This document shows, in pieces, positions 13,201-16,200 of a DNA stretch of 64,000 nucleotides. The DNA is from Phyllobates terribilis (taxonomy: Eukaryota): assembly GCF_046119375.1 (NCBI RefSeq), contig NW_027362768.1:144894001-144958000 (forward strand). The letters are read 5' to 3'. Positions within the stretch are counted from its first letter, which is position 1, and each line of letters opens with the position of its first letter. The notes beneath the pieces are model-generated. The model had not been told where the DNA came from. It was given only the letters and a program-made list of their open reading frames with translations, and made no database searches. A program made the position numbers and the translations under genes.

Positions 13201-16200
13201 ACCTCAAAAAGAAGTCTCCCGCCGGTTCCGGAGGGTCCCCGCCAACGGACCCCATCACAGGTCGTTTCCCGCCGGTTGTCCGCCATTTGCAGCTTTTTCC
13301 CGCCATCCATGGAGTTTCCCGCCACTGGGAGACGATTCCCGCCATTTCCAAAGATTTCCCGCCTTGGAAGAGCGGACGCCATTATGGGCGTGCCAGAGGG
13401 TGGCATGAGGCCACCTCCCATCGTGGGCCAGGTCGAAGAATGGCGCCAAAAGCGGAAACCGCGCCCACCAACAGAGACTGTGATGCTGGAAGTGTCCATC
13501 AGCGTGAGAGAACTGCCCCTGGAACTGACAATCACTAAGTTGCCCCGGGACCACCCTCAATGTGGGCGGAGACGGAACAAAACAGCGAAGATGGGTGCAG
13601 CCTGGAGGAGTCTGGAGAGAGCGCACCCGGAGACAAGAAGTCTGGAGAGGAGTCCAGAGAAAGCGTACCCGGAGATGGAGGGAGAGACAGGCAGCACCGA
13701 CCCAGTGGTCAGGAGCCTGCTGCAAGCAACAACCCCACTAGGCTTAGTGGAGATCCTAGCACAGCTCCCCCGAGACCGGGAGTGTGCACAGACCGCGCTG
13801 GAGGGCCTCGCACGGAGGATGGCCCAGGTGCAGCAAGACACGCTGACGGAGTGGAGCCGTGAGATGGCCCAGCAGACCGGAACCCGTCAGCGGAGCACGC
13901 CACCCGAGACGAGGAGACAGACCGCCTCTGAGGATGGTGCAGGAGGAGTGAAGGCCGGAGACGGCGCCGAGGAGGGAGCTGAACGGACGGAGGCAGGTAA
14001 AGGGGACGTCTCTACCCCGGGCCGAGAAACCGTGTACCTGTCCCAGCTCCCCGTCCCAGAGCCCGAAATTCCCGCTGCCGTGCCCGTCGCTGCATCGTCA
14101 CCGTGCCGGACTAGGCCTCAAGCAGAAGCCGCGGCCGCGACCCCTGTGACGTCACACGCCTCGACCCTGAGCGCGGCGAAACAGGAAATACCATCGGCCT
14201 GGTCGCAAGGTCTAGTACCTCCGGGCGCCGCAATTCCAACAGCGCCCCCTACCTCCGCGGAGCCACCGGCCTGGTCGCAGGGCCGAGTACCCCCGGGCGC
14301 CGCCGTCCTTACGGTGCCCTTTACCCTTAGGGTGCCCCAAGCCTGGTCGCAAGGCCCGGTCAACCCGGGCGCCGCTACCATCAACGCGCCCTCAACATCT
14401 CGAGTGCCGCACCTGGGCGAAGATCTATTTGCCCAGCACACGTGCCCGGATGGGCAGCCCTTTGTATGGCCCCAGGAGTACTACCAACTGGAACTCCAAA
14501 GAGCAAGGCCCCTGTGCGAGCCCCTGATTCCGGCTCCGAAGCCCGTCAGGAGAACCCCGCTCCCGCTAGAAGAAGCACAATTCGAGTGGGACCCCACCGG
14601 AGGAGACCTCATGGGGTTCACTCAAGAAACGCGGGCAGCTGCAGCAGAGCGAGTGGAGTGCTGCCGCCAGCAGTTGGCAGCCTTCGAGCAAGAGCGGAAA
14701 GAGAGGCGGATCCGTGAGCAGTGGCTGCAGGAACAGAGCGCAGGGCAGAAGAGCCGGACCAGGAGGAACCCCCGTGCAGCTCATGGTCCCCGTACCACCG
14801 GGACTGTGATTAAATTCAACCTGCAGCATGGGTGGGGCTTCATAAGAGACCATCATACCCCCGGCGACGTCTTTGTAACCCGCAGAGACGTAGAAAGCCA
14901 TCTGCCGGAGGGACACAGAGGTCGTGACCTATATGTAGGGGACGAGGTCACGTTCACCCGGCACAAGTGTGCCAAAGGACCCTACGCCCTCCATGTGCAT
15001 CGCCTGACGGAGGAGGAGCTGCGGTGTGAGGAGGAGCAAGAGGACCCGGACGGGTCTGAAGATAAAGAAGGAGCAGGAGGACGCCGTCGTTAAAGTACGG
15101 TAAAGAGACTGTAAATAGTTACCCGTCGGGGTACAGTGAACTGTTGCTGCTTTAAATATGTCCCCGTTGGGACAAGTGTAAACTGTTACCCGTGTGTCCC
15201 TTAATCCCACTGACCGAGGACTGAGAGCGGTCATTCCTTCCTTATACCTGGTCGAGGACTGAGAGCGGCCATATCCCCTTGTATATAGTTGCACTTTCTA
15301 AGGCGCCCCCTACCGGTTTTATAGGAAACTGTTGTTTTTCTTGAAGAGACTGTCGCACTTTACCCGGTCACAAGTTGCACTGTGGCCGGAGGAACAAGAA
15401 TGTTATTTATGAAAAGTTTATGCTGATATATATATTGTTTTATATGTTTATGTTTGATGAAAAAAATTGTATGTTTTGGATGTTTATTCTCTTACAGCCC
15501 GAGGACGTGCTGTGATTTACCAGGGGGGAATGTAGCACCCTGAGGATTCGGCTGCTACAGGGGTATTACACCTCAAGCCAGAGGTGTGGTATTCCACTCC
15601 CGGGTAAGGATGGAGTGTGGAACTGAGCTAGTTAGCTGCATACACTACATACATCCCATTTCCGGGGGACAGATCGACGGTACTCCCACCAGTTTATGTG
15701 CAGGTACGATAGTGTCTGTCCCTGGCTGGAGTGGGAGGGGGGTGGAACATCCCAGTAGTGTAGGGGCAGATAGGGGGAGCAGTCTGGGTAAGGCTAGGAG
15801 CTCATTGGGTGCTGGTCACCTGAGCTCACACATAGAGGGAGTATATAAGGTGGGCACCATCTTAGGACAGGGTCTTTTGTAGAGTGAGTCAGTCTGTCAG
15901 AGTGTAACCTGAGGAGCAGAGCAGAGAAGCTCAGCCAGAAGGGCTGACAGGGAGTTGTGGTTCCGGCTGGGCCCAGCTCCAAGGCCAAGAGAGAGAGAGG
16001 AGTCAGAAGGACCCAGAGAGAAGGAGAAGGAACCCCAAGACCCCAGAATACAAGCAACAGGGTGAAGGGTTGGCACCTAGGGTACCGGATCCCAAGCTGG
16101 CAGAGAGAAAAGCACACCTTAGCCAGAGACCGGAGGTCGTGGGCAGGATCTGCCACGACCCTCACCAAATCCACCAGGAAGGCAGACCAAGTATAGGGTC

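Follow-up and report, generated by a model that had tools for sequence, protein, structure and literature searches.

Within the 64,000 nucleotides of the Phyllobates terribilis genome analysed here (contig NW_027362768.1, forward-strand positions 144,894,001 to 144,958,000; hereafter 'the window', whose own numbering is used throughout) lies a complete long terminal repeat (LTR) retroelement of 4905 bp (11877-16781, plus strand), the sole gene of which encodes a protein that carries a cold-shock domain (CSD) close to its C terminus. The element is devoid of pol, its single open reading frame (ORF) is intact, and the encoded protein belongs to a family found in hyloid frogs, the CSD of which displays an affinity to that of the Y-box proteins.

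Anatomy of the element and its single gene

The retroelement can be called complete because its LTRs are paired and bounded by TG and CA, and because it is accompanied by a TAAT target-site duplication, a polypurine tract and a tRNA-Ser primer-binding site (PBS) (Table 1). When the window was compared with itself by BLAST, the two LTRs proved to be 99.68% identical, with 4 mismatches over their 1251 bp, and direct reading confirmed that both begin with TG and finish with CA. The element is thus young and recently inserted; if the neutral rate is taken to be close to 1e-9 per site and year, which is an assumed and not a measured value, the 4 differences per 1251 bp suggest that the insertion took place some one to two million years ago. 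A tRNA-Ser primer had already been supposed in the preliminary description of this DNA, which was made from the sequence alone, and this supposition is borne out by the identity of the PBS with the start of the antisense oligonucleotides published against human tRNA-Ser(AGA), CCA end included (PMC13478228, PMC3299991). The PBS 18-mer occurs once in the window, and neither the search with it nor the self-BLAST showed the LTR, the internal region or the PBS to be present anywhere else in the 64 kb. A stretch present in each LTR (12961-12975, plus strand, in the 5' copy) repeats the first 11 bases of the PBS (TGGCGTAGTCG).

The internal region, 2403 bp in length, accommodates one ORF. Pfam searches found no protease, reverse transcriptase (RT), RNase H, integrase or env domain in any of its frames and, besides the CSD, no Pfam domain at all in the other internal frames or in the ORFs of the LTRs. 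Having no protease, RT or integrase, the element is pol-less and therefore non-autonomous. Two further sequence features of this region deserve mention. Just past the PBS and inside the open frame, the motif T[TC]CCCGCC recurs six times on the plus strand at a spacing of 19-31 nt; the window as a whole contains 7 matches, against 1.84 expected, and six of them fall in this cluster, which may represent protein-binding sites or an RNA signal and could belong to the leader. At the other end, a pyrimidine-rich run terminating in TTACAG (15480-15500, plus strand) resembles a splice acceptor and lies in the AT-rich untranslated segment, about 25 nt 5' of the polypurine tract.

Table 1. Features of the LTR retroelement, in window coordinates
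Feature	Positions	Strand	Basis or remark
Target-site duplication, left copy, TAAT	11873..11876		read directly; same four bases 3' of the 3' LTR
5' LTR, 1251 bp, TG..CA, TATA-like box near 12189	11877..13127	+	self-BLAST and reading
tRNA-Ser PBS, 19 nt, 4 nt past the LTR	13132..13150	+	matches published oligonucleotides
Sole ORF of the element, 646 codons stop to stop	13153..15093	+	0 stops, 0 frameshifts
Six T[TC]CCCGCC motifs, leader or N-terminal coding region	13236..13363	+	motif count
Three imperfect 72-nt (24-aa) repeats, Ala/Pro-rich disordered region	14191..14375	+	self-BLAST
Long R/E/Q-rich alpha-helix (predicted), residues 491-538	14623..14766	+	AlphaFold; predicted local distance difference test (pLDDT) 85-97
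Basic linker K533-R541	14749-14775	+	long helix runs into the linker
CSD, residues 547-617, predicted five-stranded barrel, Y-box type	14791..15003	+	Pfam, AlphaFold, Foldseek, profile
Acidic tail with short basic tip, residues 618-646	15004..15090	+	90% identical to the P. terribilis homologue P0001
Untranslated internal region, AT-rich near its end	15094..15521	+	read directly
Polypurine tract AGGGGGGAA adjoining the 3' LTR	15522..15530	+	read directly
3' LTR, 1251 bp	15531..16781	+	self-BLAST and reading
Target-site duplication, right copy, TAAT	16782..16785		read directly

Where exactly does translation of this frame begin? In-frame ATG triplets occur at codons 53, 78, 85, 111, 147, 175 and 223, and the closest relative, another P. 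terribilis protein (P0001; Table 2), has been annotated from the equivalent of M223. Of 20000 shuffles of the 222 codons 5' of M223, only 12 left the frame open, and a helix predicted by AlphaFold spans M223; the true start is therefore probably situated further upstream. Compared with P0001, the ORF is intact, with neither a stop nor a frameshift. From its N terminus onwards, the protein comprises a disordered region rich in Ala and Pro, followed by a long charged helix and a basic linker; the CSD comes next, and an acidic tail closes the chain. Disorder is predicted for residues 1-182 and 243-440, the two stretches being separated by a short helical segment (residues 184-242, pLDDT 65-82); the 24-aa repeats, which are shared with P0001, have a pLDDT below 50. 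The long helix, which continues into the basic linker and from there into the CSD, was also obtained in a model built from the single sequence and is partly conserved in three other relatives (P0002, P0003 and P0038). A coiled-coil interpretation of this helix was considered and abandoned, given that the best heptad register places hydrophobic residues at only 6 of 13 a/d positions; since there is no clean heptad pattern, we refer to it solely as a charged helix.

The domain, its family and its surroundings

In the preliminary description, attention had been drawn to a peptide taken to be a CSD, preceded by a basic stretch and followed by an acidic and then basic tail, and all of this has held up. 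The quoted peptide corresponds to the translation of 14791-15006 (plus strand) in the 646-codon, stop-free frame. Residues 549-616 are recognised by the Pfam CSD family PF00313 (E = 2.9e-8) with a score of 33.9 bits, which exceeds its curated gathering score of 27 bits, and no other Pfam family matches the ORF even at E <= 1. The residues preceding the domain (529-548) comprise 6 K/R and no D/E, those following it (617-646) 12 D/E and 6 K/R. The claim that no CCHC knuckle occurs in the ORF likewise proved correct and can be extended to all six frames of the whole element, none of which contains the pattern C-x2-C-x(3-5)-H-x(3-5)-C.

Structure prediction yielded the expected five-stranded oligonucleotide/oligosaccharide-binding (OB) fold. 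An AlphaFold model of the C-terminal 207 aa from the single sequence was poor (mean pLDDT 55), and the prediction was therefore repeated using AlphaFold2 and an alignment of 29 sequences, which is shallow outside the CSD. The resulting barrel consists of strands 547-556, 561-566, 572-576, 598-606 and 609-617, with pLDDT mostly above 90, and superposes on CspA and YBX1. All best Foldseek matches are CSDs: CspA and CspC with target template-modelling (TM) scores of 0.87-0.89 and root-mean-square deviations of 1.7-2.0 A, the YBX1 CSD with a TM score of 0.78, and LIN28B and CRHSP-24 with about 0.66. As modelled, the domain is a true cold-shock/OB fold of the Y-box type.

Conservation is distributed unevenly along the protein. 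Identity between the ORF and P0001 amounts to 64% in the disordered part and 71-72% in the pre-CSD segment and helix, and rises to 91% in the CSD and 90% in the tail. Residues of the putative nucleic-acid-binding face, which is formed by the ribonucleoprotein motifs RNP1 and RNP2, were compared among eight family members, with positions mapped through alignments to known CSDs. Loss of the RNP aromatics among copies had been named beforehand as an outcome that would speak against a CSD, and it is not what was found: the first aromatic of RNP1 is W in six of the eight members, Y in one and V in one; the second is F in seven; and the Phe of RNP2 is invariant, so that each RNP1 aromatic position is preserved in 7/8 and that of RNP2 in 8/8. 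The two residues after RNP2 are Arg in 7/8 and 6/8 members, respectively. Judging from 91% versus 64% identity and from the retained RNP aromatics, the element lineage appears to have kept the CSD under constraint.

From which host gene might the domain have been taken? On its own, the CSD of the window scores 26.9 bits against a bacterial Csp, 25.1 against YBX1 and 13-15 against LIN28, which puts it at roughly the same distance from the first two and farther from LIN28. Its beta3-beta4 loop, on the other hand, aligns with that of YBX1 with one gap, versus a 5-residue gap relative to bacterial Csp; the best PDB matches of the Bufo family member (P0049) are YBX2 and YBX1, with E about 1e-8; and in a search of the PDB with the family profile, the top eight matches are all YBX1 or YBX2 (48-50 bits), followed by CspA (41) and LIN28 (22-27), with no match to CARHSP1 or UNR. 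A Y-box origin is favoured because of the loop alignment, the PDB matches of the Bufo member and the ranking in the profile search, and the CSD was most likely acquired long ago from a host gene of the Y-box type and has diverged since. With an identity of about 31-35% to Y-box CSDs, it is neither a recent copy of a YBX gene nor a YBX orthologue; the latter assignment is also at odds with its being intronless and located inside an LTR element.

When 1.84 billion representative proteins were searched exhaustively with HMMER, 54 matches at E <= 0.001 were obtained. Searches based on indexed words, performed with the full ORF, its C-terminal region and the family alignment, returned only 1-2 matches, as low-complexity words filled their candidate lists. 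Matches extending upstream of the CSD were confined to proteins of P. terribilis, Ranitomeya variabilis (two) and Anomaloglossus baeobatrachus (two) (Table 2), and all named hosts of the family are hyloid frogs (Dendrobatidae, Aromobatidae and Bufonidae). Ranked by single-domain score, the family members lead, from 148 down to 33 bits, with one bacterial CspA-family protein falling within this range. The remaining matches are dinoflagellate-type proteins with multiple CSDs and bacterial Csps, the total scores of which are inflated because several weak domains are summed. In three of the frog relatives the gene range equals the coding length, which means that these genes are intronless, and Pfam detected no pol or Gag domain fused to any relative. 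No exact match to the ORF, read from five possible starts, was present in the protein collection; no homologue of the N-terminal 222 residues was seen among those proteins of relatives that were compared; and a search of a metagenome collection with the single ORF protein as query gave no match.

Table 2. Relatives of the element-borne protein
Protein	Host or source	Length	Identity or score	Extent of the match
P0001	Phyllobates terribilis	431 aa	72% identity	extends upstream of the CSD
P0002	Ranitomeya variabilis	382 aa	39% identity	extends upstream of the CSD
P0038	Ranitomeya variabilis	328 aa	31% identity	extends upstream of the CSD
P0003	Anomaloglossus baeobatrachus	481 aa	41% identity	extends upstream of the CSD
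P0020	Anomaloglossus baeobatrachus	549 aa	30% identity	extends upstream of the CSD
P0005	Ranitomeya imitator		71.7 bits (single-domain score)	CSD-level relative, same signature
P0049 (XP_040278526.1)	Bufo bufo		45% identical in the CSD	CSD-level relative
P0024 / P0055	sequencing run ERR14218477			CSD-level relative, same signature

Two relatives call for comment. The Bufo protein is named 'Y-box-binding protein 2-A-like' by NCBI and scores 37.7 bits against the YBX2 CSD, yet it carries the signature of the element-borne family, and as far as can be told from its sequence the name is probably misleading. A Logan contig from run ERR14218477 (L001), which encodes a distant member, was considered as a possible instance of the same element and dismissed, because it has no nucleotide similarity to it and no Ser-type PBS.

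The rest of the window holds a mixture of host and repetitive sequence. An intronless ORF of 463 codons (59279-60670, plus strand) matches bacterial-type proline-tRNA ligase (TIGR00409, 441 bits, above the cutoff) and is probably the gene for mitochondrial prolyl-tRNA synthetase, PARS2, whereas an ORF with a Menorin domain (551-1207, minus strand; PF10223, E = 2e-34) probably constitutes an exon of a host FAM151-type gene. The remnant of an unrelated retroelement occupies approximately 34267-38357 on the minus strand; it contains an ORF matching RVT_1 (E = 4e-18) next to one matching LAP2alpha (E = 2e-22), its coding sequence is broken up into several ORFs that overlap and differ in frame, and no LTR pair was found around it. 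Fragments of Tc1/mariner-type transposases are located at 49054-49755 (minus strand; HTH_Tnp_Tc3_2 and Sleeping Beauty HTH domains) and at 21491-22087 (plus strand; DDE_3). Inverted repeats of about 146 bp at 18103-18248 and 19687-19832, which are 95% complementary, are separated by some 1.4 kb and have further inverted arms inside, are reminiscent of the terminal inverted repeats that delimit a small DNA transposon. Arrays of tandem repeats extend over 9272-10464, 31732-32817 and 33113-33418; the GC-rich stretch just 5' of the element shows periods of 49, 80 and 37 nt, and those further on are of about 393 nt and 17 nt. Neither tRNA genes nor Rfam families were found in the 64-kb window.

What the element-borne protein may do

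What could an element without any pol gain from encoding a protein of this kind? In the reading that we prefer, and to which we assign a probability of roughly 0.55, the CSD is part of the lone, intact ORF of a young, non-autonomous LTR element, the product of which is not a recognisable Gag but a member of a hyloid-frog protein family that most likely goes back to an old capture of a Y-box-type domain and that would bind the RNA of the element itself. In contacting single-stranded RNA, the protein would use the RNP1/RNP2 side of its barrel, assisted by the adjoining Arg-rich segments. It might then, as it is being translated, preferentially coat or stabilise the very RNA that encoded it, and this coating could stabilise the RNA or mark it for copying by the enzymes of an autonomous relative. 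By these means, the pol-less element would gain an RNA-protein particle, for which a helper would supply the enzymes and, if needed, the capsid. Such a role would be functionally close to that of the 'nucleocapsid substitute' envisaged in the preliminary description and would not require the protein to be a Gag.

That the protein should nevertheless be viewed as a Gag is the alternative that the preliminary description implied, since it placed the CSD where a Gag zinc knuckle would normally sit. The ORF would then encode a genuine, very divergent Gag, in which the CSD replaces the zinc knuckles and takes care of RNA packaging and of annealing the tRNA-Ser primer. In keeping with this, the ORF is the first one 3' of the PBS and leader, i.e. 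it is found in a Gag-type position; with up to 646 aa, its product comes close to the 617-aa Gag of the zebrafish element BHIKHARI-1; and a nucleic-acid-binding module is situated at its C-terminal end behind a basic stretch. Moreover, some Gags are devoid of zinc knuckles, the BHIKHARI Gag having a glycine-rich patch instead (PMC12067270), and the short helical segment at residues 184-242 might be counted in its favour. However, no Gag, capsid, matrix, Retrotrans_gag or zinc-knuckle family was found by Pfam in the ORF or its relatives, the family profile matched only CSD proteins in the PDB and no Gag or capsid, and Foldseek, run against the PDB and viral models, returned only CSD and S1-type folds and no retroviral Gag. 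AlphaFold places some 60 helical residues before position 440 and predicts no two-lobed helical capsid domain, the position of which is taken up by disordered, low-complexity Ala/Pro repeats; the alignment is shallow outside the CSD, and a very divergent fold is possible there, but the same program did recover the capsid fold of the BHIKHARI Gag (PMC12067270). A PTAP sequence, which might have passed for a Gag late-domain hallmark, was discarded as such: it is present in a single copy, lacks conservation and turns up by chance in 10% of shuffles with matched composition. The Gag label is therefore not supported for this ORF, and we deem it quite unlikely that a divergent Gag hides behind it. 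What survives of the zinc-knuckle comparison is the placement itself, C-terminal in the first ORF past the PBS and preceded by a basic linker, and because the element has no pol whatsoever, it amounts to a positional analogy.

It is also conceivable that the gene is a passenger or an accessory, that is, a transduced Y-box-like host gene without any part in the copying of the element. It would either be carried along as neutral cargo or influence host mRNAs, say their translation or stability in germ cells, in the manner of cellular genes that other retroviral elements have captured. Y-box proteins possess an Ala/Pro-rich N-terminal part and a charged tail, a layout that the element-borne protein loosely recalls, and the affinity of its CSD points in the same direction. 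Endogenous retroviruses (ERVs) of birds have, furthermore, captured CSDs and other host domains repeatedly (PMC12287698). A neutral cargo, by contrast, would hardly hold its CSD at 91% identity against 64% elsewhere, nor would its RNP aromatics be expected to survive between lineages that share no more than 25-45% identity. Several deep lineages of the family coexist inside single genomes, as would befit a gene that travels with its element, and direct reading found neither a poly(A) remnant nor a polyadenylation signal of a captured mRNA before the polypurine tract; all things considered, we regard the passenger scenario as unlikely. Very unlikely, in our opinion, is a further possibility, namely that hyloid frogs have a lineage-specific host gene without introns, which may have been domesticated from an element long ago, and that one of its copies came to lie between these LTRs by chance. 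The relatives do figure in the NCBI annotation as normal protein-coding genes, of which each genome has one or two, and no pol gene was called within 10 kb of them; since annotation pipelines mask repeats, however, neither the small number of annotated copies nor the lack of pol calls is very informative. In opposition to a chance location, the ORF starts 3 nt past the PBS and ends about 440 nt before the polypurine tract, and the 99.7% identity of the LTRs together with the one 4-bp target duplication around the pair indicates that the whole unit was inserted as one retroelement.

Several observations nonetheless weigh against a Y-box-derived, RNA-coating, non-Gag protein. The His position of RNP2 is never His in the eight members compared (0/8; T, N, A or G instead), and the beta1 Trp of canonical CSDs is kept in just one of them (1/8). 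As these are the canonical base-stacking residues, the binding surface must differ from that of YBX1 and Csp; by its residues, the predicted binding face is a family-specific variant. Identity to any Y-box CSD is limited to the 31-35% mentioned above, and the proposed Y-box origin relies on a ranking of PDB matches and not on a tree including frog YBX, LIN28, CSDE1 and CARHSP1. Flanking LTRs were seen for a single copy, the one in the window, the relatives being represented by proteins and gene ranges. Finally, within the 64-kb window no autonomous element was seen that has this LTR or PBS in common; the one bearing an RT, at about 34-38 kb, is unrelated and shares no sequence with the element studied here.

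Taken to its extreme, the preferred reading could mean that a Y-box-derived CSD protein took over the entire job of Gag in an LTR lineage of hyloid frogs, providing an RNA coat reminiscent of LINE-1 ORF1p and a ribonucleoprotein particle of its own, with no capsid and with a helper contributing the enzymes only. We consider this improbable. If true, it would represent a kind of structural-protein replacement that has not been described for LTR elements.

Comparison with known systems

The Y-box proteins YBX1, YBX2/FRGY2 and YBX3 share with the element-borne protein the CSD subtype with its long beta3-beta4 loop, the Ala/Pro-rich N-terminal part and the charged tail. Unlike them, the frog protein is encoded by an intronless, LTR-borne gene, has lost the RNP2 His and the beta1 Trp, and exhibits the low identity discussed above; the long C-terminal series of alternating basic and acidic islands is absent, too, its place being taken by an acidic tail of just 29 residues that ends in a basic tip. 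In functional terms, the closest parallels may be sought elsewhere. Retroviral nucleocapsid and LINE-1 ORF1p contain small C-terminal modules that bind single-stranded nucleic acids and adjoin basic segments, and they coat or chaperone the RNA of their elements. These are functional analogues only: no homology was found, and they employ a CCHC knuckle or an RNA-recognition motif versus the OB barrel of the frog protein, for which, in addition, neither a capsid nor a trimeric coiled coil was demonstrated; by analogy, it may do the same work.

As for the architecture of the element, the nearest precedents are BHIKHARI-1 and -2 of zebrafish and ENS-1/ERNI of chicken, which are non-autonomous ERVs with a single ORF and neither pol nor env (PMC12067270). 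Like the frog element, they are composed of an LTR, one long ORF (617 aa in Bik-1) and a second LTR, were active recently and have no zinc knuckle (PMC12067270). In their case, however, the product of the ORF is structurally a clear Gag, in which a coiled coil and a capsid domain are accompanied by a glycine-rich patch (PMC12067270), whereas the frog ORF has no predicted capsid, ends in a CSD and, among the 1.84 billion representatives searched, gave no relative outside the frog CSD family.

The literature contained no paper that we could find on a CSD replacing the nucleocapsid in an LTR retrotransposon, nor on a frog ERV with a Ser PBS. CSDs inside retroviral elements as such are not without precedent: a survey of 758 bird genomes reported 46 ERVs carrying Pfam CSDs, which were captured several times and at varying positions (Ref. 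PMC12287698, Mol Biol Evol 2025), so that CSD capture by retroviral elements must be considered already known. The avian and the frog elements have in common a PF00313 domain of host origin located inside an LTR-bounded element (PMC12287698). They differ in that the avian ones were recognised by their RT and that the position of their CSD varies (PMC12287698), while the frog element has a CSD protein as its only gene, with no gag, pol or env, and belongs to a family that has diversified across hyloid frogs. The frog element thus unites a captured CSD with the pol-less single-ORF layout, having a CSD protein as the sole gene, no capsid and a diversified hyloid-frog family, a combination for which we found no published description.

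These comparisons have several implications. Those frog gene models called 'uncharacterized' or 'YBX2-like' that belong to this family are probably element-borne and not host genes. More generally, captured host RNA-binding domains reveal which host functions serve genomic parasites, and the convergence implied by an independent pick-up of CSDs in birds and in frogs suggests that the benefit is a real one. The frog element is therefore well suited, as a natural system, to finding out how a Y-box-type domain affects the RNA of a retroelement, and it is a cleaner case than the bird ERVs, because its CSD protein is the sole gene, is intact in a copy with 4 LTR differences per 1251 bp, and is conserved best in the CSD itself.

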